DNA of 64,000 nucleotides, taken from Ginglymostoma cirratum. Lineage: Eukaryota. Shown here piece after piece: positions 9,408 through 61,653 of the stretch. The stretch spans positions 248,001 through 312,000 of the forward strand of contig JAHRHZ010000282.1 in NCBI GenBank assembly GCA_024137785.1, written 5' to 3'. The notes under the pieces were generated by a model. That model was not told where the DNA came from. It worked only from the letters and a program-made list of their open reading frames with translations, and did not search any database. The translations under genes and the position numbers were made by a program. Position 1 is the first letter of the stretch. Every line of letters begins with the position of its first letter.

Positions 9408-9450
<43 letters not shown>

Positions 9451-10015: not shown

Positions 10016-11457
10016 ATCATTTGCACCCACTGAGAGTTGTGAAGGGAGACAACAGAACCCTTTTCAGCTCGTCTCGAACTTGTTCTGGGATATTGCATAA
10101 ATGAAGACGTTGTTGCACGAACTGAGTATCTGCAGCATGTTTGTCGTCTCTTGGAGAATGAATTGTGGGTCAGTGAAATCCAAGCCACTGAAGGATGTCT
10201 CACCAGTAACCCACACATCGAGGAATCGCCCGACATAGGTGACCCATAGAAGGAGGAAGCTCAGCGAGATAGTGAAGAGCAGGATAATGGACCTCTTGCA
10301 GTTGGCCATCTCTGGGTCTGCTTGGCTCGTCCTGCCCCGGAGCATCCCTCGAGCACTGCTGGCCACTAAGATGTATTTGACAGTCAAGACGTTGAGCAGC
10401 AAAATAAGGAGGAATGGGAGAACAAGCATCAAGATGTGATTCAGCCAGTCATAGGATTTCCATGCAAGTGAATTATAGTATGTGTCTCTGAAGTCACAGA
10501 ACCAGGACACCCCGTCCACGATGTACAAGGGCTAGTAGACGAAGTAGGAAGGTAGGTTCTTGACGCAGCTCAGGACACAAACCACAATAAGACCGTTTTC
10601 TCTGTGTAGTATCTGGTCTTCAGACTCTGGGAGCAGATGGCGACAAATCGGTGAATGGTGAAGGCCACTGTGAGCCAGATTGAACCATCTCGGCTGGCAT
10701 AGATCATCACAGTGCTGAATGCACAGGCATTTGTCGTGGACAGGGCACTGTGCCGGAAGTAAATGCCACCAATCCGATTTAGGATGCACCCAGTGATGAT
10801 AACCAGAAAATCGCTCAGTGCTATCCCCACCAAATAATAAATTGTACATCGAGAGAGTCCACACCGTCCTCGTAATAGTACAACGATCGCCAGCAATTTG
10901 GCTGTGAGAAATTGCAAACTATTATTGAGCTGGCTTGAGTAATCATTACATACAGTTTTAAGCTTTAGCGTAATTACAGATCTGCAATAATTTTCTTTGA
11001 AATACTCTAGATATCTGTGCATGAAACTGTCGAACACAATGATAGCTGATTATTCCATATAACCCCAAAAACTTTAGATTGTAGTTTCCAGCATTGCAAC
11101 AGAATTTAATCTTCAGCAGCATATCTGATCAATATTCAGTCAATGCTATCCATTACAATCCACAAATCAATAATGTGACAAACAATTGTTACGTAAATTC
11201 TCAGTGGGATATAATCTTGCTGCATCTTAAAAATGTGAAGTACAACTCAACATTCCCTGTATGTATATCGTGATCTGTGCTGAGGTCCCTTCAGCTGGGA
11301 ATATGAAAAAATTCAAAAGGTGTTCCTAAAATGGAACAGAAAGATTTTGTTGCACTGAAAAACAAATATTTGGAACCTGTTACTTACCAGGGACACCAAT
11401 AACTGCAAGAGCTGGATAATAAATGGCATAGAACGGGCCATTTGCTGGGCCATGCAT
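10016..11457 (-). pseudogene. GPR139-like rhodopsin-family GPCR pseudogene (exon 1 11388-11457, exon 2 10016-10901)
   Basis: Exon 1 MHGPANGPFYAIYYPALAVIGVP with a GTAAGT donor. Exon 2 is nearly colinear with the intact copy at 60014 but has a frameshifting deletion near 10585-10592, a TAG near 10532, a frameshift near 10075 and DRF->HRF. Confidence 0.9.
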
Positions 11458-11959
11458 CACTTGTAATGAACTAATGGAATTCTCGAAATTCCTCACGTCA
11501 GCTCTGAGTCACAGTTAAACGTCTCTCATTTATCCAACATCAGGGTCTCGAGAGGAACAATTAAATTCGTACATGTATCTGGCTTTCAGTTCAGTGAACA
11601 AACAGCGCAAATCACGGTTTCATGTCTTCTATGTAACACTGGTAAGAAGCACAATTACATACACTTTTTACCTGAACCACTATGTAGAAATTCTGAAGCT
11701 CCCTTTCATGCGTTTTGATGTCGCTACTAAACTGAGTGACGATGGCAAAATTGGAGCTGAGGCCTTATGCCTAATTTGAATGAAATCTCAGACGTTAGCT
11801 GCGACTATCCCAAGTGTTTCAAATCTTTAGCTGTCAGATTAGTTAAATATTTTCGTTCTACGGTGCTGCTGTGTTAACATTCGTCTATATTTACAATTGA
11901 ACAGTTTGAAATAATGGTTTACCAATATGGTATGATGTCTGAGGAGGAGGCAGCGCTTG

Positions 11960-13100
11960 TAAATTCTTTGGCATATGAGAACAGAATATTTCTTGTACAA
12001 AAGGTTGATACATCCCTGCACAAGATGGGCTGCATTCCACAGTCTTGAACGAGGTGGTCGGAGAGACCATCAGTGCAATGATTGTCATCGTTGGAAGCTC
12101 GAGAAATTCCCTACATTTTCCTGTAGATTAGAAAGACACCATGATTTAAGAATGGCGGGCAAAGTAGTAATTGTCTAAGACCTGTTCAGTGTCAGCAATG
12201 GGAAAAGTGTCAAATCATATAAAAATACAAGTGATAAGTCGGCAATTCGAAAATAACTACATAATTGTGCTGAGCCAATATGGAGTTATGAAAGGGAAAA
12301 CAGTTTTGCCAAACTCACTCGAATTTGTTTGAGGCAGTTATATGGAAAGCCAATAAATGTATACCAAAAAGGTTGATTCAAACTTTTGAAAGCTCTGCAT
12401 AACATCCCACAAGGAATCCAGAAAACAAAATTAGAGAATGCGAGATTGATGTTACTATATTGCCATTAATTAATACGGGGAAATCAAACAGCAGAAATAA
12501 GCTGCTTGACCTGCTGTGTTCATCCAGCCCCATGCTTGTTATCTCGGATTCTCCAGCATCTGCAGTACCTTTTATCTCTGAGCAGAAATAAATTGACTAT
12601 TTTGAGGTCGGCCAACTATTAATAGTAGGAGGGCCACAAACATCTTCATTGGGCAAAAGAGTTTGACATTCGACATCATGATTGTATGTGGGAAGCAATC
12701 ACAAGTTTTCTAATTTTATTGATGACATAAAACTGGGTGGTAATGTAATTCCCGTAAGCCACAGGGAGGCTGAAATGGGGCCGAGACAAACTACTTATAT
12801 GGGAATGAACCTGACAGATGGTACATAACATATTAATTGCGACTTTATCCACATTAGTAGTTAACACACGAGGTAGAATGTTTCTCACGTTGTGAATTCT
12901 GGGAAGCGCAGGTGTTGAAAGGGATCGGGAGCTCCTTCTTCATGACTCACTAGAAGCTCGAACTCTGGTGAAGGATGCAATTAGGTCAGCAAATGAAAAT
13001 TCGGTCTTCATTACAAGATGAATTGAATACAAGATTGACGATATCTTGCTGAAGTTGATGTAATTCAGCCTTGATGTAATTCTGGGACCTCAGCAAAAGG
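11960..13100 (+). mobile_element. Old, highly decayed CR1-like LINE fragment
   Basis: Remnant similarity to CR1 ORF2 DNA (e.g. gatgacataaaactgggtgg, approximately the FADDTKLGG motif); paralog at ~62150-63190. Confidence 0.55.
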
Positions 13101-14940
13101 CCATCGCAGATTGGCCACTTCGCACTCCTGGGTAAAGTTGGGTGTAATGATTTGAAACTTGCCTTCAGCACTGACTTTCTGGCCTCCTCCAGTTTTGACT
13201 ATAGGGAGCTTGTCTGCACCTACCTCATGTGCACCAGATTAAGCATCATTAACGATTTCTTCGTGTCTGTCTAAAAATAAGTGCAAATTTCACATTGTTA
13301 GCAATTTGTCTACTTTCGGCTGGTTGATAATTTAGACTGGAATAATCTGAAAAAAAAACAATCATTTTGGATTCACTTTTCTCCAAAATTAATGTAATGT
13401 AACTTGGCAATGAAATGTGGGCCCTTGTTAATGTTGGGACAAGCCCTGATTTCATTGCACGAAATCTCTGGACTCTGCCTGTGTTGGTTTTTCACCTAGC
13501 CTTGAGTATTATTAAGCAATGAATAGTATCTGAGATTCATCTAGGATATTCTGCGTTTGCTTGCATTTTAACTGACTCTGATGATGTGGTACCAATTGCT
13601 TACACTAAGTGAATTTCAGCCAGCACTAATTCTATCAATGTTGTACTCGTCCCCATTATTATTTAACTTTTGCCAGCATCCTTGATTTGTCGGCATGGTC
13701 GTGTGAGTGTTTGTAAGGCCTGGTAATTGTTTCACGAATCCCTGTCTCCTTCTTCATCAATTTAGCTTTGGTCTGTTTCGGTGTTTCAACAAACCCTAAT
13801 TTAAACAAATCTGAATATTCCACCCCACTCCCTCGCACATTGCACATATGTCTGTGCCTCGGATTGTATTCTTCAAGGAGTGGAATATGGTTTTAATCAT
13901 CCCAATCTCCTTGACCTTCCATTGACCTCATACTGTGCAAATATTGCTGTGGTTCTTCAAGTTATATTGCTCTTTGGCATAATTGTACATGTTTGTCCTT
14001 TTTGATTATTATCGAGGTTCGATCTCACTTTCTATTCACAGAGTCTTTGAGTCATACAGCATAGATGCAGCCCCCTCAGTCCACCATGTCTACACCTATC
14101 ATGTTCTCAAACTAAACTTGTCCCACCTGCCTGCATTTGAAACATATCCATCCAAACCTTTCCTACTCATGAGCGTACCTAAATGTCTTTTCAACTTTGT
14201 AATTGTACCTGTATTCACCTGACGATTTTTGTCGAAGTCTGGGGCTCCTTGGGTAATTCCACAGACACCAGTCAACGGTCTGCTGCATAAAACTGTCTAT
14301 CTTTAAAAATTAATGATGTCTCAAGTTTTGCCGCATTAATTCCTGTTTCTGCTTATGCAAAAATCCGAGTATTAACAGTTGTTGCAAACTAGACGGTATC
14401 ATTTTTTCATTACACAGGCATCATGTTAATTTAATAATAGTGTGAAAGAGACACAATGCTACGTAAGTGTTTATAGCTGAATTGTTTTAAGCATTGATTT
14501 GGCGCTGGGAAAATCTCCATGTCTGGACGATCAGAAACTATTTTGTACAATAGAGGAATGAAACAAAATAAATATTCTTTTTCAATTGCTTGTTTCCAAC
14601 GGCATTGACTCAGAGCAAAATGCATCTTTCCCTGCGCTGTCGCATGAAAAATAGATGCAGGATACGAAACAGGAGACAGCTACAGGATAAGTTCTCGGAT
14701 AACTTTCTGATCAAAGTTTCATAGAAAATTACAGCTCTGGTCAAGCACCGGGATATTTTGTTTTGGGCAGGGCTGATTATGTAAAAAATTGTGGAAACAG
14801 GACTCGTTGCTGTAAAAAATTATAATTCTTTAAATTGCACATGTTTGACGCATTTTAGTCACATATTGAAATGTTCTTCTTGCCTTGAATTCGATTCCAC
14901 AGTTGCTGTCTTGTCGTGTCCTCAATCCTCGGAACGAATA

Positions 14941-17136: not shown

Positions 17137-17600
17137 ATGTCCTGTTTATATTATTTACAGATATAAATGATGGTGCTAACTGGTGAGTTTGCTTTAAATA
17201 GTTTGCGTGTCTTTCAGGCGTTATATTTACACTATGACTGCTGAGACATGGTGCTTGCACTTTCAGGCACTAGTTACAGTGACTCACTGTCGCAAACTCC
17301 GCCTGATGTAACAGTACAGGAGGTAGAGAGCTTAAAACTAGACTGCCGTTAATCGATGATGACGCTGCCGGAGCCTGTCGTGATACTTTCAGTGTTTCCT
17401 GAAAACTCAGATATTTACTGAAGTTACACAGAGTTGAGGATGAACACACGCCTAGAGAATTAAAAGACATTTTTTCACAAAGAAAATAAACCCGTTCCCT
17501 TAAGTAACTATAGGTCTTTTGTCTGTGAAAGTTTTGATTATTTGTCTCTTTTGAAGTTCTTACTCTGCTCCAGCGTAACAGCGGACACTGCACAAAAGCC
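17137..17600 (+). pseudogene. Decayed TCR V segment (leader 17137-17182, V exon from 17267)
   Basis: Leader with an internal stop and a GTGAGT donor. After TTTCAG the exon reads TSYSDSLSQTPPDVTVQEVESLKLDC...LRYLLK with stops and frameshifts. Nonamer-like ACAAAAGCC at 17592; heptamer decayed. Confidence 0.7.
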
Positions 17601-21156: not shown

Positions 21157-22062
21157 TCATTTCAAGAAAATGGTGAGAGTGGCGACGGGGTATATCAGAA
21201 CTGTCTTCAGCTCCCCTCGAAACACACACAGAGACACCGCATAGATGAAGACGTTGTTGCAGGAATGAAGCAAACAAAATGGTTTACGTGTTTCTTGGAG
21301 GATGTATTGAGTGTCACTGAAATTCTGCCCACCGAAGTAACATTCAGCTTTAAGTCGCGTGTAAATAAAATGTCCGACAAGGAGGGACCAGAGGAGGAGG
21401 TAGCTCAGCGAGATGGAAAACAGCAGGACAATGGACCTCTTGTGGTTGGCCATTTCTGGGTATCGTCACTTCTCGGCGCCCCAGAGCTTCCTCAGTGTTC
21501 TGTTCACCACTGGATGGGTCTTATTGTGAGGAAGTTACGCAGCAGGAAGAGGAAGAACAAGACAAAAGGAGTAATGATGTGAAAGAAACAACCATAAGCC
21601 TGACAAGCTGGCCAGATGTAGAAATTGGCTTTGAAACTGCAAAACCAGGGTGTCTCGTCCAAAATGAAAATGGACTGGAATGCAAACTAGTGAAGGGATG
21701 TTCTTGATATAGCTCAGGGCACAGATCTGTACAATGATCAGTGATGCAGTTTTCTTGCAGTCTCTGGTTTCCAGCCTCTGGTGGCAGATGATCATCAAAC
21801 TGTCAATGGCAAGGGCGACTGTCAGCCCGAAACGGAATCAATGGTGGAATAGACCATCAAGACGTTGAGAGCACACACAGTCGTGATGGGCAACATACTT
21901 TCCCTGATGATGATTCAGCTGATTCGGTTGACGATGACTGTGGTGACAAGGATGCTTGTGATGACAAGGAAATCACTCACTGTGATCGTCACCAGGAAGT
22001 AAGTGATGCAACGGGAGAGACCGCACCATCATCATGTTGGATGAGGAACCAAATACAAGCTC
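21157..22062 (-). pseudogene. Third GPR139-like GPCR pseudogene (main exon; more divergent)
   Basis: DPEMANHKRSIVLLFSISLSYLLLW...DTQYILQET...HSCNNVFIYAVS matches TM6-TM7 of the intact copy. TM2-TM5 remnants have many frameshifts. Exon 1 not confidently located. Confidence 0.85.
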
Positions 22063-35780: not shown

Positions 35781-35787
35781 CATTTGA

Positions 35788-41476: not shown

Positions 41477-41479
41477 CAC

Positions 41480-42523: not shown

Positions 42524-42634
42524 AGATCCCAGCTGAATTATTTACTGTAATGAACTGCCAATAAAGCTCTTCCTGTGGAAACGCTGTACATAACAGAAAT
42601 AAATATTCACTTTCTTATTTCAATATTATACTTT

Positions 42635-43340: not shown

Positions 43341-43464
43341 TTTCTTTGCAAATTTCCCAGAACACTTTCGTTGGAACGATATAAATATTCACATTGAATC
43401 AGTCTGATGATGCACACAATTTCAAAGCACGAATGGATATTTTAAGACGAAATGTGGGGATATT

Positions 43465-44900: not shown

Positions 44901-44953
44901 GCACTGAGAGTGATCACAGTGTGGAGTAAGGCTTTGGTGCAATGCGGCAGGAA
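44899..44953 (+). pseudogene. Possible 3' end of a TE-disrupted V segment with an RSS heptamer
   Basis: gcactgagagtgat (A-L-R-V) followed by a perfect CACAGTG at 44915-44921; nonamer poor. Confidence 0.4.
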
Positions 44954-45312
44954 AGTAGTCTCAAGTTTTTGAATGATTCAATTGAAGTTGAAATGCAGAA
45001 TCTCGCAGGGTTATACCGGGAAGCAGGATATATCTGCTTTTATTGAGCAGCATGCGATGGACTCTAATTTGTTTGTGAATTTGTACGTCGCAATTACTTG
45101 TACACGCCACTAGATAGTAGTGTGCATCTGAATTAATATTGAAGGTGAGTGCTGAAGGAAGAATGACCTTGCAGACAGTGTGAGAAACTACCACGGTGAG
45201 AGGTTTGTTACAAAAACAAACGCCAAGCCTCAGCTTCTTCTGCAACTTCAACGAGACAGCTCTAAGTTAGATGTGAAGCGAAGCATTCTTCAAGCTGTTT
45301 ACTCTTATTGAC

Positions 45313-48300
45313 AGAACATAGAACATCGAACATTACAACGCAGTACAGGCCCTTCTGCCCTCGATGTTGCGCCGACCAGTGAAACCAATCGGAAGCCCAC
45401 CTAACCTATACTATTCCATTATCATCCATATGTCTATCCAACGACCATTTAAATGCCCTTAAAGTTGGCGAGTCTACTACTGCTGCAGGCAAGGCATTCC
45501 AAGCCCTTACCACTCTGTGAGTAAAGAATCGACCTCTGACATCTGTCCTATATCTACCACCCCTCAATTTAAAGCTATGTCCCCTTGTTGCTAGCCATCA
45601 CCATCCGAGGAAAAAGGCTCTCACTGTCCACCCTATCTAATCCTCTGATCATCTGGTATGTCTCTATTAAGTCACCTCTTAGCCTTCTTATCTCTAATGA
45701 AAACAGCCTCAAGTCCCTCAGCCTTTCCTCATAAGACCTTCCCTCCATACCAGGCAACACCCTGGTAAATCTCCTCTGCACCCTTTCCAATGCTTCCACA
45801 TCCTTCCTACAATGCGGCGACCAGAACTGTACGCAATATTCCAAGTGCGGCCGCACCAGAGTTTTGTACAGCTGCAACATGACCTCACGGCTCCGAAACT
45901 CAATCGCTCTACCAACAAAACCTAACACACCGTAGGCCTGCTTAATAACCCTATCAACCTGTGTGGCAACTTTCAGGGACCTATGCACATGGACACCGAG
46001 ATCTTTCTGATCGTCCACACTACCAAGAACCTTACCATTAGCCCAGTACTCTGTGTTCCTGTTACTCCTTCCAAAGTGAATACCTCACACTTTTCCGCAT
46101 TAAACTCCATTTGCCACCTCTCAGCCCAGCTCTGCAGCTTATCTATGTCCCTCTGTAACCTGCAACAGTCTTCAGCACTATCCACAACTCCACCGACTTT
46201 AGTGTCATCCGCAAATTTACTAACCCATCCTTCTCTGCCCTCATCCAGGTCATTTATAAAAATGACAAACAGCAGTGGCCCCAAGTCAGATCCTTGCGGT
46301 ACACCACTAGTAACTGAACTCCAGGATGAACATTTCCCATCAGCCACCACGCTCTGTCTTCTTCCAGCTAGCCAATTTCTGATCCAAACCTCTAAATCAC
46401 CCTCAATCCCATGCCTCCGAATTTTCTGCAATGGCCTACCGTGGGGAACCTTATCAAACGCTTAACTGAAATCCAAATACACCACATCAACCGCTTTACC
46501 CTCATCCACCTGTTTGGTCGCCTTCTCAAATAACTCAATAAGGTTTGTGAGGCACGACCTACCCTTCACAAAACCGTGTTGACTATCCCTAATCAAATTA
46601 TTCTTTTCCAGATGATTATAAATCCTATCTCTTATAATCCTTTCCAACACTTTACCCACAACCGAAGTTGTGGTCTATAATTACCAGGGTTGTCTCCACT
46701 CCCTTTCTTGAACAAGAGGATGACATTTGCTATCCTCCAGTCTTCTGGCACTATTCCTGTAGACAATGACGACATAAAGATCAAAGCCAAAGGCTCTGCA
46801 ATCTCCTCCCCAGCTTCCCAGAGAATACTAGGATAGATCCCATCCGGCCCAGGGGACTTATCTATGTGCACACTTTCCAGAATTGCTAACACCTCTTCTT
46901 TATGAACCTTAATCCCATCTAGTCTAATAGCCTGTATCTCAGTATTCTCCTCGACGACATTGTCTTTTTCCATTGCGAATACTGACGAAAAATATTCATT
47001 TAGCACCTCTCCTATTTCTTTGGACTCCACGCACAACTTCCCACTGCTGTCCTTGACTGGCCCTAATCTTCCTCTCGTCATTCTTTTATTCCTGACATAA
47101 CGATAGAAAGCTACCTGCCAAAGACTTCTCATGTCCCCTCCCGGCTCTTCTTAGCTCTCTCTTTAGGTCCTTCCTGGCTAACTTGTAAGTCTCAAGCGCC
47201 CTAACTGAGCCTTCACGCCTCATCTTTACATAAACCTCCTTCTTCCTCTTCTCAAGAGATTCAACTTCTTTAGTAAACCACTGTTCCCAGGGACCACTTC
47301 CTCCCTGCCTGACAGGTACATACTTATCAAGGACACGCAGTAGCTGTTCCTTGAACAAGCTCCACATTTCAATTGTGCCCAGCCCCTGAAGTTTCCTTCC
47401 CCATCCTATGCATCCTACGTCTTGCCTAATCGCCTCATAATTGCCTTTCCCCCAGCTATAACTCTTGCACTGTGGTATATACCTACCCCTTTCCACCGCT
47501 AAAATACATGTAACCGAATTATGGTCACTATCACTAAAGTGCTCACCTACCTCCAAATCTAACATCTGGCCTGGTTCATTACCCAGTACCAAATCCAATG
47601 TGGCATCGCCTCTTGTTGGCCTAGCTACATACTGTGTCAGGAAACCCTCCTGCACACATTGGACAAAAACTGACCCATCTAAAGTACTCGAACTATCGTG
47701 TTTCCAGTCAATATTTGGAAAGTTAAAGACCCCATAACAACTATCCTGTTTCTTTCTCTACAAACGGGATGGTCTGCACCTGTACCAGAGGGGTACCAAT
47801 ATCCTGGGGAAGAAATTTGCTAAAGCTCTTCGGGAGGGTTTAAACTAATTCAGCAGGGGGATGGGAACCTGCTAAATTGTTACTTTTGCTCCTATCCAGA
47901 ATCACCTTTGCTATCCTTTCCTATGCATCTCTGGAACTATTCGGAGGCCTATAGAAAACTCCCAACAGGGTGACCTCTCCTTTCCTGTTTCTAACCTCAG
48001 CCCATACTACCTCAGTAGACGAGTCCTCACCAAACGCCCTTTCTACCACCGTAATCCTGTCCTTGACTAACAATGCCACACCTCCCCCTCTTTTACCACC
48101 TTCCCTGATCTTGCTGAAATATCTAAACCTCGGAACCTGCAACGACCATTCCTGCCCCTGTTCTATCCACGTCTCCGAAATGTCCACAACAAGTCCCAGG
48201 TACTAACCCATGCTGCAAGTTCATCCACCTTATTCCGGATGCTCCTGGCATTGAAGTAGACACACTTCAAACCACCTTCCTGCCTGCCGGTACACTCCTG

Positions 48301-49620
48301 TGACCTTGAAACCTTATTCATGACCTCACTAGTCCTAACTTCCTGTACATTGGAGCTACAACTTGAGTTGTATCCCCCTGCTGAATTAGTTTAAACCCTC
48401 CCGAAGAGCGTTAGCAAATTTTATCCCCAGGATATTGGTACCCCTCTGGTTCAGGTGCAGACCATCCCGTTTGTAGAGGTCCCACCTACGCCAGAATGAG
48501 CCCCAATTACCCAGGTATCTGAATCCCTCCCTCCTGCACCATCCCTGTCGCCACGTGTTCAACTGCAATCTCTCCCTATTCCTAGCCTCGCTAGCACGTG
48601 GCATGGGTAACAAACCAGAGATAACAACTCTGTTTGATCTAGCTCTAATCTTCCACCCTAGCTCCTTGAATTTCTGCCTTGCATCCCCATCCCTTTTGCT
48701 ACCTATGTCGTTGGTGCCTATGTGGACCACGACTTGGGGCTGCTCCCGCTCCCCCTTAAGGATCCCGAAAACATGATCCAAGACATCACGGACCCTGGCA
48801 CCTGGGAGGCACCATACCAACTGCAGTCTCTCTCGTTTCCACAGAATCTCCTATCTGTCCCCCTAACAATGGAGTCCCCAATGACGAATGCTCTCCTCCT
48901 CTCTCCCCTTCCCTTTTGAGCAACAGGGACAGACTCTGTGCCAGAGACCTGTGCCCCATGGTTTACCCCTGGTAAGTCGTCCCTCTCAACAGTATCCAAA
49001 ACGGTATACTTGTTATTGAGGGGAACGGCCACAGGGGATGCCTGCACTGTCTGCCTGTTCCCTTTCCGTCCCCTGACAGTAACCCATCTACCTTTTTCTT
49101 GTACCTATGTTGTGACTACCTCCCTGTAACTCCTCTCAATCACCCCCTCAGCATCCCGAATGATCCGAATTTCATCCAGCTCCAGCTCCAGTTCCCTAAG
49201 GCGGTTTCCAAGGAGCTGGAGTTGGGTGCACTTCCCGCAGATGAAGTCAGTAGGGACACTAGTGATGACCCTTACCTCCCACATTCTACAGGAGGAGCAT
49301 GCAACTACCCTAACATCCATTCACATTACTATGAATTCCCAAAAACGGACTTTTGGAAAAAAACTAGTAACTTGCCAAATCCGCGCTCAGAACATTTTTT
49401 GGTTAGAGGAGGAGGATGGGTGGGAGACAATACCTAACTACTGTTTCGGGTAAAGCAACTGCCCCAATATATTACTTCACTTACTCAGCCATCCCGTGTC
49501 TGCTCCTGCTCGTGCGCGCTCCGCCAATTCATGAGGTAAGTTTTTAAAGGAAAAGCTTACCTTCCCAGGCTGCCCTCGCGCCTCCTTCTGGACTCCCGCT
49601 GCTGAAACTACTGAAATATA
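45313..49620 (-). mobile_element. Near full-length CR1 LINE (ORF1 zinc-finger/coiled-coil/SGNH esterase; ORF2 endonuclease-RT), frameshifted
   Basis: ORF1: CSSCRMW...CGKC, IGDSIVRG, HIGTNDIG, DGLHL. ORF2: [34 protein letters not shown]. (TTCTATG)n-type 3' tail at 45313-45334. Confidence 0.95.
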
Positions 49621-49692: not shown

Positions 49693-50028
49693 ATGCTCCG
49701 AATTTGCAGAGTCATCCTGCTGTTTTATACTCTGATGTCCACGGAGGTGACTGGAGAAGGCGAAGTGACGCAACTTCAACCAACGAATGTTGTTAGTAAA
49801 ATGGGAATTACCTTTCATGAATTGCTCCATTGCCACTACATTTAACACCGTGCATTGGTACAAACAGCAACCGAATATGCCACTGCAAAATCTGGTGATG
49901 GCCAAAAGAGAATCTGACCAGCCTGAGAGGATTACTATTTCAATCAGTGGAGATTACAAACTTAGTATCTTGACTGCGAAAGACGCCAGACTTAATGACA
50001 CTGCCACCTATCTCTGTGCCAATGATAG
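49693..50028 (+). pseudogene. TCR V segment with intronless leader; single frameshift near 49805-49815
   Basis: ATG 49693 reads MLRICRVILLFYTLMSTEVTGEGEVTQLQPTNVVSKMG. A shifted frame continues FMNCSIATTFNTVHWYKQQPNMPLQNLV...ERITISISGDYKLSILTAKDARLNDTATYLCAND. Confidence 0.85.
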
Positions 50029-50067: not shown

Positions 50068-52966
50068 GACAGATTGGGAGTTCCGCTGGGCTGATTTTGA
50101 GATATCTGTTTCCTAACTCTGTGCTCCAATAAACCAAGATAAATGAAACGAGAGTAAAATACAACAGAAAGTTTGGAGCAGCAAAAGTTAAAGATGGTCA
50201 GACGCGAAGACAATTGGCTGTGCGGATGGAGGTGAAGGAAGCGTTTTTGGGAAGCCAGAGACATTGACGGAGGAAACGGAAAGGATGGACAGCAATAATA
50301 CTTGCAGAGGATAGAATGGTGTGAAATGGTTGAGGAAGAAAAGGAACGATGTGAAAAAAATAATCGAACATGATGCACAGAGTTTAAAGATCAAGCTAAA
50401 TCACAATTGAAGGAAACATGAAGAAAATGCACTGGCCTTTCCTTTAACATGGCTCTACTTCACTAAATACCCCACTGTCAACATTCTATAGGTTTCATTG
50501 ATCAGAAACTCATCTGGACTCACTGCAGAAACACAATAGCTACAAGAGCAGGCCAGAGGCGAGGAATCCTGCAACATTTCTCCTGACTCCCCAAAACCTC
50601 CCTTCCATCTAAAATGCACAGGTCAAGAGTATGATGGAATACTCCCCACTTGTCTGAAAGAGAGCAGCCCAACAACACTCCAAAAGCTTTACCCCATCGA
50701 AGACAAAGCAGCCTGCTTGATTGGCACAACATCCACAAACATCTGCTGCTTCCACCGCCGATGCTCAGTGTGTGCTATCGACAATATGCACTGCTGAAAT
50801 TCACCAGACAGCAACTTCCAAACCCACAACGACTTCAATCTGGAAGAACAAGGGACAACAGATATCTGGGAACATCACAATATTTAAGTTCCCCACCACG
50901 CCACTTACCATCCTGACTTGGAAATATATTGCTGTTCTTTCATTGTATCTCGGTCAAAATCCTAGAATTTCGTCCCTCAGTGCATTGCAGGTCAAACCAC
51001 AACAGGTGGACTGCACCTGTTCAAGAAGGCAAATCACCATCACCTTCTCAACGGAAACTAGGAACGGGTATAAATTCTTGTCTGGCTGCCACGCTGAAAC
51101 CCCACAAATTAATAAATAAAGCTAAAATCAATAGTAACACGATCTAATCATCTAATCCCTACAGTGTGGAAGAAGGGCATTGGGCCCATCGAGTCCACAC
51201 CAAGCCTTTGAAGAACATTCCACCAATCCCTGTACCCCTGAATCTCCTCTGGCTAAAAAACTTAACCTGTCGACTGTGGGAGGGAACCAAAGCACCCGCA
51301 GGAAATCCAAGCAGGCAAAGGGAGAGTGTGCAAACTCCCAAAGGCTGTTGCATGAGGCTGGTATCGAACCTTGATCTCTGCTTGTGTGTGGCAGGAGGGC
51401 TAAACATTTAGTCACTGCGTCTTAATCGAAAGAACGCTTCCATAAAATTCATCATTTGGTATTGCTCCACTCATAAATTGTTAACTTCCTGGCACCGCAA
51501 TCTTCCTAGAGGTCCAGCCAGAGTATGTTATATTCACATTCACTGAAACAGTATACAACGTTGTCTTCTTGTAGGCTCTTTGAGTCAGCTTCACCACTTT
51601 TCTTCCGATTTATTCTTGCGTCATCTGTAAACCGGGCAGTGGTACCTTCACTTCAATCAGACTTTGGATTGTGCACTGACGTATATCTCTACTGTTTCAC
51701 CATTCCCATTCAGATGAAGGAGACTTTCCCACAACGTATTTTTTAAAAAAAAATCAATTATTCTTTTATGGGCGTGACTGGCCACGCGAGTCTCTACCTC
51801 TAATTGCCCGTGACAATATGGCAAAGAGGCATCGATTTGAGCCACTGTAGTGCATCTGATACAGATACTGGAGTTACATTTACAATGACACTAAATAAAT
51901 TTAATCAAATCTGGAAACAATGGATCTTACCAGTAAGTGCATCAAAAGCAATATTTGATTCTACTGCTTCGTTGATTAGAAGTTTGCTTGTTTCTTTATA
52001 TATTTGGTTATTTTTCTCATTATTGTATCCAATCTCTCAGGGCCTCTGGTCCTCTGCATCAGTTGCAGGGAGTCATCAAAGTCCAAGAGCACCTTTTAAG
52101 TGGGGAAACACAGTTCTGATACTCGAACAAATGAACTAATTCCCGTGCCTGGTTTTGCTTACAGAAATAATAACTGTTCCGGGAAAACATTCGATTTGAT
52201 CTCTGTCGAAAACGCTGTTTGCTAATGAACAAATTTATTGTGCTCCTGAAATAACTGCACAGAGGCCGATATCCCGTCACCAAGTAACCCTTCATTTACA
52301 TATGCAGACTACACTGGCTGCTGCCAGCCAGCTTGGTGTCAGTCCCCTGAAATTAGAAGATTCAGAGCCTCCTGCTTATACCAATTTCCCAGGGCTCCCT
52401 GACTAGCTCAAGTTAATAAGCCCAACCATCGATCTCATTGTCAATGAGATCCACCTGTCTCCAAACGCTACAGTTCCTTAAGCAAAAATAAGAAAGAACT
52501 GCGGATGCTCGAAATCTGGAACAAAAGCAGGAATAGCTGGAGAAACTCAGCGGGTCGAGCAGCAACTGTGAAGAGAAAACTGAGTTAACGTTCCGGGTCC
52601 CATAAACCTTCTTCAGAACTTTGGTCCTTTCTCACAACAGCCATGATATGGAGTGTATTGAAAATAACAATTACTGCAGATGCTGAAGTCAGACACAACA
52701 ATGTGGAGCTAATGGAACTTCTCTGATGCTGCCTGACCTGTCATGTTCCTCCAGCTCCACACGGTGTTGTCAAAAGAGTTCGAAACTACTTGGTTCAATC
52801 GAGGAACAAAGGATCTTGAAGCTTATTGGCTGTCATCTGATGTGTTTGCCAACAATGAACCAATGAGTAGAGATCCGGAAATTACTCAGCCTGTTTCCAA
52901 CACTTGCTGAAACCCATCTTGTCTTCGGCCAGTTCTGCTCACTTTCATCGTGATCTCTCTGCAAAC

Positions 52967-53018
52967 ATGTCGCCTGGAGATCTATGTATACTTCTCACAA
53001 TAGCAGCTCTTCTAATCG
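52967..53018 (+). CDS. TRAV: Leader exon of the intact TCR alpha/delta V segment
   Basis: MSPGDLCILLTIAALLI + G|GTAGGT; phase 1, compatible with the acceptor at 53466. Confidence 0.85.
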
Positions 53019-53466
53019 GTAGGTTGAAAAGTTGTCTATTTCTATGCTTCAGCTCTTTGCCGTGAATTACATTTACTCAAGCAGTTCGGGCAACATGGAG
53101 GCAGAAATACATTCTCCCCAAATAAAAACCAACTGGATATAAACATGTCCCAACAATGAGCAGAGTTTGGGAGAAATGGGCAAATGCACCTGAGTGAATG
53201 ACAGTGGAAGAGTTAGGCTGGACATTCAGACAGGACTGAGGCCAAAGAGATTATTCAACCGAGGAGAGAGTTTTAAATCCACCAACAGTTTTCAGCTTTC
53301 CTTTTCAGTTTCAGGAATGAACTTGGAAATGACCTCCACATAATGGATTGTCGTTAGACTTCCCTGATTTATTTCTCATGTTAGTGGTGAAGGTTAACGG
53401 GCTGATTCTGAGCGATAGAATGTTGAAGTGTGTTATTCAATTTTCTAAAACTCTATGCTCTTACAG

Positions 53467-53770
53467 GACTATGTCTTGGAGATTCTGTCTCACAAACAGC
53501 GGCTGCAATTGCAGTGAATGAGGGTGATGATGTCCTGTTGTCCTGTAATTACTCTACAACAAGTAGCAACCCTTACCTGTTCTGGTACCGCCAACATTCC
53601 AGGGGGTCCATGCATTTTCTACTCCAGAAAAACCGATATTGTGAGAAACCGGCGACTTTTATCAAGGACAGGCTTTCCTTGGATTTTGATCATGTGAACC
53701 ATACTATCCAGATGGGATTGTTGAAAACAGAACTATCAGACTCCGCAGTGTATTTCTGCGCACTGAACCC
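53467..53770 (+). CDS. TRAV: T-cell receptor alpha(/delta) variable segment, apparently functional
   Basis: Open frame GLCLGDSVSQTAAAIAVNEGDDVLLSCNYSTTSSNPYLFWYRQHSRGSMHFLLQKNRYCEKPATFIKDRLSLDFDHVNHTIQMGLLKTELSDSAVYFCALN with canonical Cys, Trp and YFC. Confidence 0.92.
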
Positions 53771-53809
53771 CACAGACACTCAGAACTGAGCTGACCCTGT
53801 ACAAAAACT
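53771..53809 (+). other. 23-spacer RSS
   Basis: CACAGAC + 23 nt + ACAAAAACT. Confidence 0.9.
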
Positions 53810-56724
53810 CTGAGGGCGCCACTGATCACGATACTACGTCAGGCAAACAGCGAGATAGGAATGGATCTGAAGTGGTTCCCGAATTCACGGTGATGAATCA
53901 CACCTCTAATTCGGACACAAAACTTTAATCATTAGAAATCTATTCTTGAAATAAACTAATATCATCAGTTTCGTGAATATAAAACAAATTATTTACTTTG
54001 TGTCTTTCACGTTGTTCCAAATTACAGCGATGAGGTGCGATCGAAAATTCAGCAACTGGTTTTGATCCAGCAAAATCCTCCACTAATATAGAGAACTGGG
54101 TTTGAGAGACAATGACGTGGCTCGGGATGCTAATAATGAAACACTGGAGAAAACTGAATATTGTCAAGCACATTGTGGGTTCTTGCCCCTCTCCCTCACG
54201 TTACGGTTCCAGAATGGCAAGTGAGAGATGCATAGGTCCAGGATAATGCAGACTTGCTCGAAAATATGAGTAAGGGAGTGTGATGTAACTCATACCTGAA
54301 AAACTCACACAAATAATTAAAAGCATTTTATCGCAGCTGATTAAAGAGTCAGGTCCGCCAGTGAAAGTCTCAGTCACTTGAGTCTTTTGCTGTTAGGCTG
54401 AACGGAAATGAACATTTTTGATCACAGGTATAAATTTGTTCATCCTTTGCTAGAAATTCAGATCTGAACATTTAAGTTGTGCACAGACCAATGTGCTCCT
54501 CTTTTTCCTCTGGCGACATTTAAGAGAAACAGACTCATATTTTGATCGTGAGTCACAAAAGAGACGTTCCTGACTCTGGGTGTTCAAATACAGTGAAACC
54601 TGTTTCTGCAGATGACAGGATGCATGTGGGACATGGCATCCCTCAGGAGATAATGCATGCTGCACAGTCAGAATGCCACTTTCATTGTAAAACATGCTAA
54701 AGCCGTTGATCTGGATCACACATGTGAGGCGACATTTTGAGAAGTGAACTATCTTGAGAGTTTATGATCGGCAGCTTCACAAATGATTAATAGGAGTGCT
54801 CAGTCTATGTCTCAGTGCGCCATTGTACAGTGATACACTGCAGTGTCTGACAGCTGAGTTGCCACCAGCAATATTGTCATGACTTACTTTTGAATAATTT
54901 AAGTGAAAATGAACCAAGTGACGTTCGGTCATCGAGCAGTACAGCACAGAAACACAGAACGTCGGCCCACCATGTCTCGACTGACTACATTGCCGTTATA
55001 TACTAATTCTATTACCTACTCATAGTCCGCATCCTTTATTCCTTGCCGATTTGTGCACTTGCTAAATGCATATTAAACATAGTTAGCATATTTGCTTCTA
55101 CCCCTTCACTGTTAGCACATGCTTGGCACCTCGCACTCTCTGTGTAAAGTAAAGTGACTCGCACATCTCCTTTAAACTTTCTTCTCTCACTTTAGACCTA
55201 TGCCCCATAGTATTTGGCATTTTCTGCCGGGGAAAATGTTTCCAAATATCTACTCTTTCGTGCCTGTCATAATTTTATATACTTTTATCAAGTCGTCTCT
55301 CACATCTGACACTAATGCGAAAGTAATCTGGGCATATGCAAGCTCTCCTTCTCGCTGATACACTCCGACCAACGCAACATCCTGGTAAATATCTTTATGC
55401 ACCGTTTCCTATTGCGTGGCGACCAGTGCTGCACACAGCCAGTGTTGTTGCCACTGAGAGGTCGTAGAATGCAATTTTCGTGATTAATCTCTCACTGTCG
55501 CAGTGTCATGCTTCAACATCAATTGCAGAAAGCAATGAACCCAGTGTATATTCCCATCTTTTTTCCCGGATTCCATATAAAGCATTATTTCACAGACCAT
55601 TCATCCTCAGCACAACAAAATGAACGATCTCACAGCATACAATTAGATTCTGAAAACTGAAAGCTCATTACAATTTGTTCTGGTTAAAAAGAGTCCTTTT
55701 CTTTCAGCTTTAAAATGAGGCTGCACGATCTTCGTCTGTTCCTTTGAACATCTTTCTCTTCAATATTTTTTTCAGAACACTGTTGTGACTCTGGAATATT
55801 AGAGACACCATTCTCTCACATTGAACTCTGATGGTGAGGACATAACGATACTACATGCATTCCCGTCGCAAGAATGTACTGGCCTTTCTTCTGTCTCAAA
55901 CACTACAGCAGTTTATTTATTTTGTATTCTGCCCTTTAGACGTTGCTCAATGGTGATGAAAATATTTTTCATAATTTTACCATGCTCAACGCTGCTGGAG
56001 TTATCCTTTTCACTTAACATAAACTTCTTACATTGAAGGCATTTGGAATGCCAAGCAGTTATAAAGATTACCACGAAACAATCGCTCAGAGAATCTGAGT
56101 GCACATAGTCAATGACTACAGCAGGTATGTCTGTCTTAAAGCAGAACACAATTTGCTGATACTGCCATCCCTTTCCCTTGGGATCTACAAAGTACGGTGT
56201 TTCGCTTCTTCCTTTCCTTCCCAATATGTTAGGAATAAAGAGAGGGTGTGGGTTTTTTGAGAAATATCAGATAATGGCGCGGATACGTCTGATGGATTTC
56301 TCGTTTTTACTTGTGGGATAATTGTATCATTTTAGATCAAATTTATCAGCGTCCGTTTGGTGTTCATGGCTGAATTGGCAAGACAGTGATCTTCGTCACC
56401 TTGCAGATGTTGAAATCCTACCGGCTATGATTCACACCAGCCCTTCACTTGGAAAATGTCTAAGTAGGACAAGAAAACCCGCCCAGTTTGAGACGTGATG
56501 AGCACCGAGTTTGTAACATGCACTGGAGACATGCAGAAATCAAACATGATATCTCCCGGTGCAGCATAAGGCAGATGACCTGTTGCACTAGCAAGCATGC
56601 GGGGATTAGCTCATATCCGGCGATGTGTGCCTTTTGTGAACAGAAACATTTGATGGAATGGTAAAATTCACAAGCTGCAGAATCAGCAAAGATAATCGCT
56701 TTCACTGCTCAACTTCCATGGTTC

Positions 56725-57153
56725 TGTGGACTAATTGTATGTTGAGACTGTTTAATTTTGGCTGAGCAGTAATGAGTTAAAATAATACATGACTAGGAGC
56801 ATGAAGTAGAGAAACTTTGGCGTTACGAAACAATGCACATTGCTGTAATTGCAACCTGCCTTTCCCTCGCCTGTGAAGTCACGTAAGATGGATAGTAAAA
56901 AGGTAGAGCTCGAGCATCTGTGCACTCTTATCTGTTTGTCTAAGTAATGACCTTGCCTTGCTCAAACACAATACAAATGCTGTTTGTTTGAACTTGTTTG
57001 TACCACTGGATAAATTCTGCTTCTTTTTTATGCTTGTTGGAGTCTTCAGACCTGACCTTTTGTCAGCGTTGACGCTCCCCAAAACCACGAATAAAATCTC
57101 TTTACCTCGAAGTCTGGACCTTTGGTGTGTAATTTAATTCAGTCTCTTCGACA
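56725..57153 (+). mobile_element. Solo LTR (429 bp)
   Basis: TG...CA ends (tgtggac / ttcgaca), 5-bp TSD ggttc/gattc, AATAAA near 57090. Absent at the paralogous site in copy A (~7478). Confidence 0.75.
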
Positions 57154-59089
57154 GATTCTCTTTGAAAAGTGTGGAAATCTATGAATAAAAACTATCCGGA
57201 GGAAATGGAGTTTTTACTGATTTTCTCTACACACTAAAATACACTCGTTTGCAGATGTACATGGAAGATGATTGTCGCAAACTACACTAGGGTACCATTT
57301 GGACCTTCATATCCTGCCTACAGGTTCAAAACCTTTTTTCCTTTATTCGTAAAGTGGATGAGGGCGTTCCTGGCAAGACAACATTTATTGCACATTCCTA
57401 CTTGCCCAGAGGACAGTTAAAAGTCATCCACGTTGCTGTGGGTTTGGAGTCACATGTCGCCCAGACCAGGTAAGGATGGCAGGACACTTCCCCAAAAGAC
57501 ATCAGTGAACCAGATCGGTGTTTCCCCAACAATCGACAATAGATTCAGGGTTATCATTAGATTCGTACTCCCCGATATTTTACATAATTTAAACTCTACA
57601 TTCTAGCTTGGTGCGATTCGAACCTATGTCCCCAGACAGTTACGGGGGGCTCTGGAGTAACAGTACAACGATAACATCAGTACACTACTGCCTCCCCCAT
57701 AATTATGGATGAATGATTTCCTTTCCACTACTCATTCCACAGAACCCGCGTCTCCATCCTCCAAAGCATCCAGACTTATCCGGGCACCTTCTGAAAGCCT
57801 TTCTTTCTTCTCCTCTTTACCAGTAACTTAGCTGTATATCCCAGATCTTAACAATTCGCTGCATACAAGTTCACATTCTCACGACTAGTGTACCATTTAG
57901 CTGCAATCAATTTCCCCGAAATATTGATTGAAGCTGAGAAAATTCTTTTACAGCTAAGTTAAGATAATTTAGGGATCTCAGAGTAATACGCTTTGATTAA
58001 AGATAGGCAATACTTTCATCGTAATTGAATATGAAAAAAAATCTGTTACAGGTATGCAAATGCTTTTATTTTCTGATGGCTTTCATAGTTGGCCTCTGTT
58101 ATAACTGACTTCAGTTATAAAAGTCCTGATCGACAAAATGGCTGGGATGAGTCTTGAATGCTGTAAGTATTTTTATTTGTGTCTCTCATCTGTAGCAAAA
58201 AACTTCACTGTGCGCCAGATGCAACATAGAAATGGTTAAAATCGTGCACTTAGTCAAATCGTAGAGTTGTGCAAACAAAACTAATGGATTTTGTCAATGT
58301 ACACATTTTGTTCATTATCTTTCAGTTTACCATTAGATTATCATTAGTTGTGTTTCCACTTATTACCTGTGCACCATAATAATAAAACAAGGAACTACGG
58401 ATGTTGTAGATTTGAAACAAAACACAAATTGCTTACGAAACTCAGCAGGTCTGTCAGCAGCTGTGAGGAGAAATGAGAATCAACTTATCAAGTCCGGTGA
58501 CTCTTCATCAGAACAGTATGCCCCAGTTGACTGTCCATGAGAAATTAAAGGTACGTCTTGAGGTCAACCCTACAGTCCCATTTTCAACATCTACGAGTAT
58601 TGGAGCCTCCATGGTTCCAATTTCTACTTGAGTTCGAACAATAACCACCAGACTTCTTATTCACATTCAAATCCCAAGAAAAGATTACACAATTTTTAAT
58701 ATACTTTTTTAAATAGACTAAACATATGTTTTAATTATTTAGTGATATTCAAAACAAATAAATGACAATGTAGATGTCCACAGAAGTTTCAATAGAGGAG
58801 GAAGAATTTCTCCTCATCATAATATAGTTTTCCTTGAAGAATGAATAGCAGTCATTCAACATTTCAGTGACTGAAAATTGACGCACCTCATTTGTCCGAA
58901 TCGCCCACTAGGTGGTGCACTTCCCCCATTAGGAATATCCACGCAGGGACAAGAGAGAAAAGGTTGTTGGGAACTGGCAAAAGTAATTAATTGTCTAAAA
59001 TACACGCAAAAAATACTTACTGTATGACTTGATTAATATTTATCACCTTAATCAATAACATTGATTTTTTTTTGTGGTGGGGGAAGGTG

Positions 59090-59457
59090 NNNNNNNNNNN
59101 NNNNNNNNNNNNNNNNNNNNNNNNNNNNNNNNNNNNNNNNNNNNNNNNNNNNNNNNNNNNNNNNNNNNNNNNNNNNNNNNNNNNNNNNNNNNNNNNNNNN
59201 NNNNNNNNNNNNNNNNNNNNNNNNNNNNNNNNNNNNNNNNNNNNNNNNNNNNNNNNNNNNNNNNNNNNNNNNNNNNNNNNNNNNNNNNNNNNNNNNNNNN
59301 NNNNNNNNNNNNNNNNNNNNNNNNNNNNNNNNNNNNNNNNNNNNNNNNNNNNNNNNNNNNNNNNNNNNNNNNNNNNNNNNNNNNNNNNNNNNNNNNNNNN
59401 NNNNNNNNNNNNNNNNNNNNNNNNNNNNNNNNNNNNNNNNNNNNNNNNNNNNNNNNN
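59090..59457. other. Assembly gap (N run)
   Basis: Run of N. Confidence 1.
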
Positions 59458-60013
59458 GGTCGTGAGACTTTATCTGGATCTGCTGATAGTGTGAAAGATA
59501 TAAGCTAAATCTGAGCATTACTGAATTATCGCACAGATCGTATGATCAAGACATAAAATGAAAACGACCGAGATCATTGTTGATGACATAATGGGCTGTT
59601 CATCAGTACAGTATCAAAGTGAAGTTAAATGTGAGAGATTCAGATAAACCGATGCAATAACCCCGAGACATGAATGAGGGCGACGGAACAAAGGATTGAC
59701 AGAAGAATGGCTACTGAGAGGGAAGGACATAAAGAGATGAATATCAAATGAAATGTCAAAGACCATTAGAAATCTGAAATACTGATCACGAACACAGGCT
59801 GTGGTTTAGCGTCTCACCCTGAAATACACAGCTTCTGGTAGTTTTACATTCTGTTAGTTTTCGCAACAACGGATTTCAAGGCTGAAAATGTTAGTGTTCA
59901 TTTCTCGAGTGGAAAAGCATAAACACACAAATATTTTTAAAATTTGAGTGAGAGAAAAAGAGAATGCATTGCACACTGAGCCAATCTGACAAAAGCAAAA
60001 CAACATGACAAAA

Positions 60014-60909
60014 TTATTTGCACCCAGCGAGAGATGTGAAGGGAGAGAACAGAACCTTCTTCAGCTCGTCTCGGAACGTCTTCTGGGATACTGCGTAAAT
60101 GAAGACGTTGTTGCAGGAACTGAGTATCTGCAGCATGTTGGTCGTCTCTTGGAGAATGAACTGTGGGTCAGTGAAATCCAAGCCACTGAAGTAGGTTTCA
60201 CCGGCAACCTGCACATAGAGGAAGCGCCCGACATAGGTGACCCAGAGAAGGAGGAAGCTCAGCGAGATAGTGAAGAGCAGTACAATAGACCTCTTGCGAT
60301 TGGCCATCTCTGGGTCTCCGTGTCTCCCTTTGTTCCGGATCTTTTTTCGGGCACTGTTGGCCACCAAGATGCATCTGACAGTCAAAGCATTGAGTAGCAG
60401 AACAAGAAGCAACGGGAGAACAGGCGTCAAGATGTGATTCAGCCAGTCATAGGATTTCCATGCAGGTGAATTATAGTATGCATCTCTGAATTCACAGAAC
60501 CAGGACACACCATCCACAATGTACAAAGGTTGGAATACGAAGTAGGAAGGCAGGTTCTTGACGGAGCTGAGGACACAAACCACTCCGATGAACAATGAGG
60601 CCGTTTTCTCAGTGCAGTACCTGGTCTTCAGACTCTGGCAGCAAATGGCGACGAATCGGTCGATGGTGAAGGCCACTGTGAGCCAGACTGAACCATCTCG
60701 GCTGGCATAGATCATCACAGTGCTGAGTGCGCAGGCGTTTGTCGTGGACAGGGCACTGTGCCGGAAATAAATGCCGCCGATTCGATTGAGGATGCACCCC
60801 GTGATGATGACAAGAAAATCACTCACTGCTATCCCCACCAAATAATAGGTGGTGCACCGAGAGAGTCCGCACCGTCCTCGTAAAAGTACGACGATCGCCA
60901 GCAAGTTGG
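60014..60909 (-). CDS. GPR139-like class A GPCR, exon 2 (intact; 321 aa with exon 1)
   Basis: Open 7TM frame: ANLLAIVVL, IAVSDFL, SVWLTVAFTIDRFVAIC, ECL2 WFC, LNALTV, SIVLLFTISLSFLLLW, TNMLQILSSCNNVFIY. The motif pattern resembles GPR139/GPR142 (SIWITVPLTIDRY, ANMLALL..AINFFLY). CTCACAG acceptor. Confidence 0.92.
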
Positions 60910-61225
60910 CTGTGAGAAATTTCAAAATATGACTGTACTAAATCGAGTGTTCACTAGATATAGTTTTAATGCTTAAAATAACGACAGATCTGCAGTGAAT
61001 TCCTTCGAAATTATCATGAAATCTGTGCCGAAAAATGTCGAGCACAATGATAGCGGATTATGCCAAATAACACCAATAACATTAGATTTCAGTTTCCAGC
61101 ATAACAATGGCATTTAATCTTGAGCAGTTCATCTGCTTAATGTTCAGTCAATGCTACACTTTGCAATTCAAAAATCAATAATCAAACAATTGTTCTCTAA
61201 TTTCTCAGTGTAACAGTTAGATATA

Positions 61226-61405
61226 ATAAAAACTAAAAGAACTGCGGAAGCTGTAAATCAGGAACAAAAACAAAGTTGCTGGAAAAGCTCAGCAGGTCTG
61301 GCAGCATCTGTGGAGGAGAAAACAGAGTTAACGTTTCGGGTCCAGTGACCCGTCCTGAGGGAGGGTGACCGGACCCGAAACGTCAACTCTGTTTTCCCCT
61401 CCACA
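61226..61405. mobile_element. Small Penelope-repeat foldback in the GPCR intron, with a hammerhead-like core
   Basis: Inverted arms centred near 61355; ctgagga-gggtgaccggaccc-gaaa-cgtc. Absent from the copy A intron. Confidence 0.6.
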
Positions 61406-61583
61406 TTTTAGATATAATCTTGCGTCTTGTAAATGGGTGCCATTCAGTATAACTTAACATTTTGCATGTGTATATATGAACTTGGGCCGAGGTTCCTTCA
61501 ACTGGGAATATCACACAAACCCTGATATTGAACAGAAAGATTTTGTTGCACTTAAAAACAAATATTTGGAACCTGTTACTTAC

Positions 61584-61653
61584 CAGGGATACCAATAACA
61601 GCAAGAGTTGGATAATAAATGGCATAGAACGGGCCATTTGCTGGGCCGTGCAT
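61584..61653 (-). CDS. GPR139-like GPCR, exon 1
   Basis: MHGPANGPFYAIYYPTLAVIGIP + G|GTAAGT; phase 1, joining in frame to exon 2 (G+CC = Ala) inside TM1. Confidence 0.9.

Follow-up and report, generated by a model that had tools for sequence, protein, structure and literature searches.

Class A G-protein-coupled receptor (GPCR) genes that lie among the variable (V) segments of a T-cell receptor (TCR) locus raise the question of how they came to be there, and whether rearrangement of the locus has any bearing on their use. We analyzed this question in a 64,000-nucleotide stretch of the genome of the shark Ginglymostoma cirratum (assembly GCA_024137785.1, contig JAHRHZ010000282.1, positions 248,001 to 312,000 of the forward strand), referred to here as the window and numbered from its first letter. 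An earlier note on this DNA had described three paralogous GPCR genes, one intact and two dead, amid V segments that bear recombination signal sequences (RSSs), and motif search, tblastn, and gap-free linkage confirmed the arrangement. With a probability of about 0.7, we consider these genes to be chondrichthyan GPCRs distantly related to GPR139/GPR142, which are passengers of block copying in a TCR alpha/delta V array.

Self-BLAST of the window showed two collinear copies of one block, each with a V segment and a GPCR gene. The GPCR genes of the two block copies are called copy A and copy C, and the features of the blocks are as follows:

1 to 13879, duplicated block, copy 1; holds a V pseudogene and GPCR pseudogene A and contains no gap.
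2545 to 2835, plus strand, V exon of the alpha/delta type with an in-frame stop, followed by a 23-RSS at 2838 to 2876 (CACAGAG-23-GCAAAATGT); the partner of copy A.
10019 to 10901, minus strand, exon 2 of copy A; broken, with a DNA identity to copy C of 86.9%.
11388 to 11457, minus strand, exon 1 of copy A; open, with the GT donor retained.
50853 to 63982, duplicated block, copy 2, 50.85 kb downstream of copy 1; holds an intact V and the intact GPCR gene C.
53478 to 53768, plus strand, intact V of the alpha/delta type, followed by a 23-RSS at 53771 to 53809 (CACAGAC-23-ACAAAAACT); the partner of copy C.
59090 to 59457, assembly gap separating V 53478 from copy C, 556 bp 3' of the copy C stop.
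60014 to 60909, minus strand, exon 2 of copy C, 896 nt; the remainder of transmembrane helix 1 (TM1) through TM7 and the C-terminal tail, with the stop at 60014 to 60016.
60910 to 61583, minus strand, intron of copy C, 674 nt, GT..AG; polypyrimidine tract and an acceptor AG ending at 60910.
61584 to 61653, minus strand, exon 1 of copy C, 70 nt; ATG at 61653, the N-terminus and the first half of TM1, ending in phase 1, with a GTAAGT donor from 61583.

The flanks of the two block copies were 75.5 to 78.6% identical, and the GPCR gene was 82.8% identical. Since the shared block measures at least 13.9 kb, the V segment and the GPCR gene were copied together. The conventional V segments lie on the plus strand and the GPCR genes on the minus strand, so that the members of each V-GPCR pair are convergent, 6 to 7 kb apart. 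The earlier note had placed everything on the minus strand, which holds for the three GPCR genes but not for the three conventional V segments. The V segment and the GPCR gene are both dead in block copy 1 and both intact in block copy 2; with one pair of blocks, this shared fate is indistinguishable from coincidence.

The age of the duplication and the constraint on its products were analyzed from exon 2 of copies A and C. Over 291 aligned codons, the nonsynonymous divergence (dN) was 0.079 and the synonymous divergence (dS) was 0.316, giving a dN/dS of 0.25 (bootstrap 95% interval, 0.16 to 0.40), and the dS was close to the neutral divergence found in the flanks (0.26 to 0.30). The low ratio, together with a dS that matches the flanks, showed that both copies were coding genes under constraint during most of the period after duplication and that copy A died late. 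Exon 2 of copy A now carries a 10-bp deletion (at about 10585), a 1-bp deletion (at about 10076), and one in-frame stop, as well as two changes at hallmark residues (N1.50 to K and DRF to HRF). Its whale-shark counterpart, P0001, which is 91% identical, is still open.

In a gene tree of 123 proteins (support values are SH-aLRT), copy C paired with whale-shark P0010/XP_048475047 (support, 99; 95% protein identity), while copy A paired with P0001 (support, 94), and the clade of copies A and C, P0010, P0001, and Hemiscyllium P0002 had a support of 100. The whale-shark counterparts XP_048475047 and XP_048475053 both lie on one 11.73-Mb scaffold. As each copy has its own whale-shark counterpart, the duplication is older than the split from the whale-shark lineage. 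Many subclades of the tree contain one gene per species in Rhincodon, Stegostoma, Chiloscyllium, and Hemiscyllium, which indicates that most of the family expansion is old and stable, not ongoing, and the subfamily itself is older than the shark/ray split. The proposal that the GPCR family is expanding with the V array is thus borne out as far as the joint duplication of V and GPCR is concerned, but the event is old (dS, 0.32; older than the whale-shark split) and the expansion is not in progress.

The locus was identified from its V segments, in a window without a constant (C) or joining (J) region. A strict RSS consensus search gave no match in the window, and the RSSs were located by a relaxed scan and direct reading. 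Besides the two block copies, the window contains the following V segments and a third GPCR copy, called copy B:

17281 to 17346, plus strand, V fragment (motif search and tblastn).
21175 to 22033, minus strand, GPCR pseudogene, copy B; 65% DNA and 50% protein identity to copy C; disrupted by 14 or more indels and several stop codons.
28347 to 28562, minus strand, supporting V of the delta type behind the NAR V; in-frame stop, with a 23-RSS that begins at 28326 on the minus strand.
32237 to 32503, minus strand, NAR-type V of a NAR-TCR cassette; matches Pfam V-set, with an RSS heptamer that starts at 32215 on the minus strand.
49787 to 50026, plus strand, V with a canonical 23-RSS (CACAGTG-23-ACTAAAACC); extends to 50067 with the RSS.
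54818 to 54880, minus strand, V fragment (motif search and tblastn).

The intact V at 53478 matched Pfam V-set with an E value of 1.1e-12, and its top matches in the PDB were mostly TCR alpha chains (E, about 1e-15). The PDB matches of the V at 49787 included TCR alpha as well as the V domains of antibody light chains and single-chain variable fragments. The TCR alpha-like V segments, together with the NAR-type V, assign the locus to TCR alpha/delta; NAR-TCR pairs with TCR delta. In tblastn, the supporting V at 28347 to 28562 reads ...VYWYSQSPG-stop-VPKFLL... on the minus strand, and on account of this in-frame stop, the NAR-TCR cassette here may be not fully functional.

The linkage of the V segments and the GPCR genes was examined against the assembly gaps. 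There are three N runs in the window (42386 to 42523, 43734 to 44133, and 59090 to 59457), none of them in a GPCR or V exon. Copies A and B are flanked by V 2545 on one side and the NAR-TCR cassette on the other, on sequence without N, and since bases 1 to 42385 contain zero N, the V-GPCR-GPCR-NAR-TCR linkage is proven independently of the gap at 59090 to 59457. The left flank of that gap ends in ...TTTTTTTTTGTGGTGGGGGAAGGTG and its right flank begins with GGTCGTGAGAC. Both flanks border a (GT)n run at about 9390 to 9450 in the gap-free block of copy A, in equal order and orientation (BLAST). From the collinear flanks, the gap replaces a (GT)n microsatellite, with no sign of a misjoin. Misassembly was ruled out by the gap-free V/GPCR linkage at copies A and B and by the collinearity of copies C and A across the gap.

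The gene at 60014 to 61653 on the minus strand is an intact class A GPCR gene in two exons. A 303-codon open frame at 60014 to 60925 (minus strand) in the list of open reading frames was the starting point for its model. The two exons (70 and 896 nt) add up to 966 nt of coding sequence, that is, 321 codons and a stop, and the exon reading confirmed the 321-amino-acid product and the 61584/60909 splice that had been predicted before. The splice joins the exons in frame, ...GIP being followed by ANLLAIVV..., with the junction inside TM1. Exon 2 alone was used as the search query, and exon 1 was checked by reading and by tblastn with the Hemiscyllium ocellatum RefSeq model P0002, which also has 321 amino acids and the same first exon (residues 1 to 25 match exon 1 of copy C).

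Exon 2 of copy C matched Pfam 7tm_1 with an E value of 1.4e-21 and 77.6 bits (cutoff, 30.5) over model positions 2 to 260 of 260. Secondary Pfam matches to the olfactory receptor model 7tm_4 (21.9 bits; cutoff, 27) and to the nematode Srx chemoreceptor model were weak and all under their cutoffs, and a scan of NCBIfam (bacterial and archaeal families) gave no match. The class A hallmarks are present in copy C, namely, PANLL (N1.50), SDFLV (D2.50), DRF, NAC...WFC (the pair of C3.25 and the cysteine of extracellular loop 2), LLWVTY (W6.48), and NVFIY (N7.49 and Y7.53). Across 40 family members, the columns with D2.50, the DR of DRF, W6.48, the N and Y of TM7, and the two paired cysteines are invariant. 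The proline of the NPxxY motif is missing in copy C, and likewise in GPR139. The predicted protein of copy C carries the residues to be expected in a signaling class A receptor.

Copy B falls in a different subclade, together with Hemiscyllium and Chiloscyllium genes (support, 99). A tblastn search found no exon 1 for copy B, and no fourth GPCR copy in the 64-kb window.

We then placed the three copies within a wider family. A word-index search gave 737 matches, of which the best 120 were all from sharks and rays. Most of these 120 are labeled "probable G-protein coupled receptor 139," and others are labeled "sex peptide receptor-like," "FMRFamide receptor-like," "GPR15-like," or "galanin receptor 2a-like"; all such labels are automatic names. 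An exhaustive search of 1.84 billion representatives gave 101 clusters at an E value of 1e-30 or lower (about 100 clusters at 50% identity), and beyond that E value, the full-length matches fall to 23 to 31% identity. In the large clade of a 71-row tree, every named or looked-up member (25 of 25) comes from a cartilaginous fish, Callorhinchus included, and within the present sampling, the family is confined to this group.

The consensus of 40 family members starts MHGPxxGxxYAIYYPxLAAIGVPAN and aligns to TM1 of human GPR139. When a single sequence was searched against the PDB, GPR139 was found at an E value of 1.4e-5, behind GPR21, MT2, and CCR5. When the 40-member profile was used, GPR139 came out on top with 70.4 bits (E, 1.2e-18), and the next match was the PrRP receptor with 47.5 bits; GPR142 is not among the PDB matches listed, and the profile comparison therefore was one without GPR142. 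In the 71-row tree, which was built without mammalian GPR139, the large clade (support, 95) stands apart from a salamander group (34% identical) and from a single-copy orthogroup (31% identical), which are, in that order, its nearest neighbors outside the clade. On this evidence, the shark family is best described as a relative of GPR139 that forms a clade of its own and is not a one-to-one orthologue. The name "GPR139-like" given to the genes in the earlier note thus stands for the best profile match but does not extend to orthology.

GPR139 itself is a brain-expressed orphan receptor that is activated by L-tryptophan and L-phenylalanine. Its coding sequence may likewise be split within TM1, just before the PAN motif. 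The shark family and GPR139 share YY..L...G.PAN in TM1, W.TV..TIDR(Y/F)(I/V)A(V/I)C in TM3, and the N-x-x-x-Y of TM7 without the usual proline. However, the pocket differs at positions 6.50 and 6.51, which we take to be agonist-binding positions in the published GPR139 structures; the shark protein has T and Y there (W-V-T-Y), whereas GPR139 has P and R (W-A-P-R). The profile match to human GPR139 (7VUG to 7VUJ and 9M42) was aligned over all seven helices. The two also differ in number, GPR139 being a single conserved gene and the shark family comprising about 100 clusters.

The single-copy orthogroup is labeled "probable GPR139" and is represented by Latimeria XP_005988539, with counterparts in sharks, sturgeon, teleosts, amphibians, and reptiles. 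Like the shark family, it falls within the wider GPR139/142 neighborhood, and except for the salamander group, it is the nearest bony-vertebrate relative of that family. It is 52 to 66% conserved from shark to reptile but only about 31% identical to copy C, and sharks keep it beside the expanded family. Among the 120 best matches of its members (P0242, P0295, and P0298), there was no mammal or bird, and some of its gene models are fused to TMEM183A. Unnamed "GPR210" orphans near GPR139/142 have been described in coelacanth and fishes (PMC6504862), and the single-copy orthogroup may be one of them.

Other subfamilies of the shark family are clustered on many chromosomes, for example, on those of 226 Mb and 98 Mb in S. 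canicula and of 67 Mb and 94 Mb in C. punctatum, so that residence at the TCR locus is not a property of the entire family. Among the matches listed, the closest subfamily is concentrated on one scaffold per species (10 of 11 matches in Rhincodon, 6 of 6 in Cetorhinus, 5 of 6 in Stegostoma, and 3 of 3 in Carcharodon). No V-set domain fused to a GPCR was found in 20 long gene models scanned from other species; one of the 20 carries hemopexin repeats. A literature search found no paper on this family in sharks, on GPCRs in shark TCR loci, or on a link between the family and lymphocytes. The immunoglobulin heavy-chain clusters near TCR alpha/delta have been mapped in elasmobranchs, with GPCRs unmentioned (PMC12227049).

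Public sequencing runs included DNA-type runs that contain the stretch and several RNA runs with the same species label. Expression of copy C was analyzed by mapping four public runs on positions 59470 to 62500. In run X4 (polyA RNA sequencing; 1.9 Gb read, 24% of the run) and run X5 (RNA), which come from coded tissues and are without a positive control, zero reads were found on either exon of copy C. All reads of X4 and X5 pile up on a repeat in the intron at about 61204 to 61407; there are thousands of them, 95 to 99% alike, many with loose ends or opposite-strand joints. The repeat is multicopy, with internal inverted symmetry, and has the look of a shark element, similar to a short interspersed element (SINE) or a hairpin, that is abundant and transcribed. 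Run X1, which is of uncertain type and possibly RNA, gave contigs at 61685 to 61770 and 61807 to 62455, upstream of exon 1, at a depth of about 7, and nothing on the copy C exons. The zero exon reads are an absence of support for expression, not a proof of silence.

The region at 61685 to 62455 upstream of exon 1 has a counterpart near copy A at 11894 to 12142. The whale-shark model XP_048475047 has an alternative first exon that matches positions 62104 to 62340 of the window (76% identical, with a stop in frame in the window). The region may be an upstream non-coding exon, a promoter transcript, or an annotation artefact.

These results bear on several explanations of why the GPCR genes are here. 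The earlier note had proposed that V choice is coupled to GPCR expression: the genes would be expressed in the T lineage, and V(D)J deletion or inversion would remove or reposition them relative to the TCR enhancers, so that each clone would have a V-dependent complement. The geometry is suitable, as copy C lies 6.2 kb past the RSS of V 53478; deletional joining of V 53478 or of any V upstream would remove it; copies A and B would stay on the chromosome and come to lie nearer to the J-C end. Purifying selection on the gene also indicates that it has some function. However, neither 1.9 Gb of polyA RNA sequencing nor a second RNA run gave a read on either exon, the literature search found no paper tying the family to lymphocytes, and the other subfamilies are clustered on many chromosomes with no known antigen-receptor link. 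For the olfactory receptor genes in the mammalian TRA locus, we know of no coupling between V choice and expression. The proposal thus found no support in two RNA libraries of coded tissue, and we regard it as very improbable. Even less credit can be given to its broadest form, in which the subfamily would be built into a TCR delta/NAR-TCR repeat of about 50 kb in many sharks and transcribed in developing T cells, with V(D)J deletion leaving each clone a V-dependent set of receptors; if true, this would amount to somatic diversification, through recombination, of a receptor other than an antigen receptor. A difference in GPCR complement from one T-cell clone to the next is speculation.

A different history, in which V segments and NAR-TCR cassettes moved into an older tandem cluster of chemosensory or other non-immune receptors, so that the V array expanded into the GPCRs, seems to us unlikely, although it has more in its favor. 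In its large size, its clustering, its many pseudogenes, and its lineage-specific subclades, the family resembles those of chemoreceptors; it gave weak Pfam matches below cutoff to 7tm_4 and Srx; the subfamily is older than the shark/ray split; and the mammalian TRA locus also has class A chemoreceptor genes among its distal V segments. On the other hand, many one-to-one orthologues across orectolobiform sharks point to a slower turnover than that of typical odorant receptors, and the order in which V and GPCR arrived is not readable from one window. This history also overlaps with passenger status by block copying, as the GPCR is a passenger with regard to V(D)J joining in both. It is less probable still that copy C is a silent relic, no longer expressed anywhere, whose frame stays open owing to the slow change of shark sequences. 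The lack of RNA reads on the exons, the death of copies A and B, and the disagreement of whale-shark annotation pipelines on the first exon, which suggests little transcript support, are consistent with a relic; but the dN/dS over the 291 codons is 0.25, although one of the lineages compared has since become a pseudogene, the protein is 95% identical to its whale-shark counterpart with all hallmarks kept, and copy A gained three disabling lesions over the same period, so that unconstrained copies do break. Passengers carried by block copying, the explanation that we prefer, are subject to two qualifications. The expression data come from two RNA libraries of coded tissue without a positive control, so that the genes may yet be expressed in T cells, and passenger status is inferred.

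If the GPCR genes are passengers, the TCR alpha/delta array would have grown by tandem copying of multi-kilobase blocks, with a period here of 50.85 kb. Each copying event would have duplicated a V segment together with the convergent GPCR gene 6 to 7 kb downstream, and the copied unit probably also held a second GPCR gene and a NAR-TCR cassette. Ordinary birth-and-death evolution followed, in which copy C was constrained and stayed intact, copy A was constrained for a long time and then died with its V, and copy B died long ago. In V(D)J recombination, the DNA between the joined V and J is lost or inverted, which is of consequence here only if the GPCR genes are expressed in T cells. Deletional joining of an upstream V would remove the GPCR genes from the chromosome of that T cell, a loss with no known consequence, like that of other DNA excised between V and J. 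Because the V segments in the window face both ways, some joins would be inversions, which would keep the GPCR genes.

The closest known arrangement is that in mammals, where human OR10G2 lies between TRAV1-1 and TRAV1-2 and OR4E2 lies between TRAV1-2 and TRAV2, while mouse Olfr1507 to Olfr1509 lie between TRAV1 and TRAV2 (PMC4574546). In the mammalian and the shark locus alike, class A GPCR genes without a TCR function lie amid RSS-bearing V segments of TCR alpha/delta. The mammalian genes, whose synteny is conserved across species, are two or three in number and are restricted to the far 5' end of the locus. In contrast, the shark genes lie within a repeating block of about 50 kb, beside NAR-TCR cassettes, and are not olfactory receptors, as the 7tm_4 score of 21.9 bits is below the cutoff of 27.

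That unrelated class A GPCR genes can reside in a TCR alpha/delta V array was thus already known from the mammalian olfactory receptors. The shark locus differs in its GPCR family and in that the GPCR genes belong to the amplified repeat unit and were multiplied with the V and, probably, the NAR-TCR segments. The two blocks provide a dated, internally controlled example of antigen-receptor arrays that grow by block duplication with passengers. They also draw attention to a large cartilaginous-fish GPCR family which bears only automatic "GPR139" labels and of which the literature search found no description. Cartilaginous fishes are said to have very few classical odorant receptors, and for this reason the family merits attention as to where it is expressed.

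Two further elements lie between the NAR-TCR cassette and V 49787. Overlapping open frames at 35528 to 36174 (plus strand) contain C2H2-zinc-finger-like strings (HTF..C.ECG); a Pfam search with one of these frames gave no match, and the region probably represents either a zinc-finger gene in decay or a repeat. A retroelement resembling a long interspersed element occupies about 42300 to 49100 on the minus strand, with a reverse-transcriptase domain at 45976 to 46431 and a GDSL-esterase domain at 48389 to 48820, and it is this element that is interrupted by the gaps at 42386 to 42523 and 43734 to 44133.

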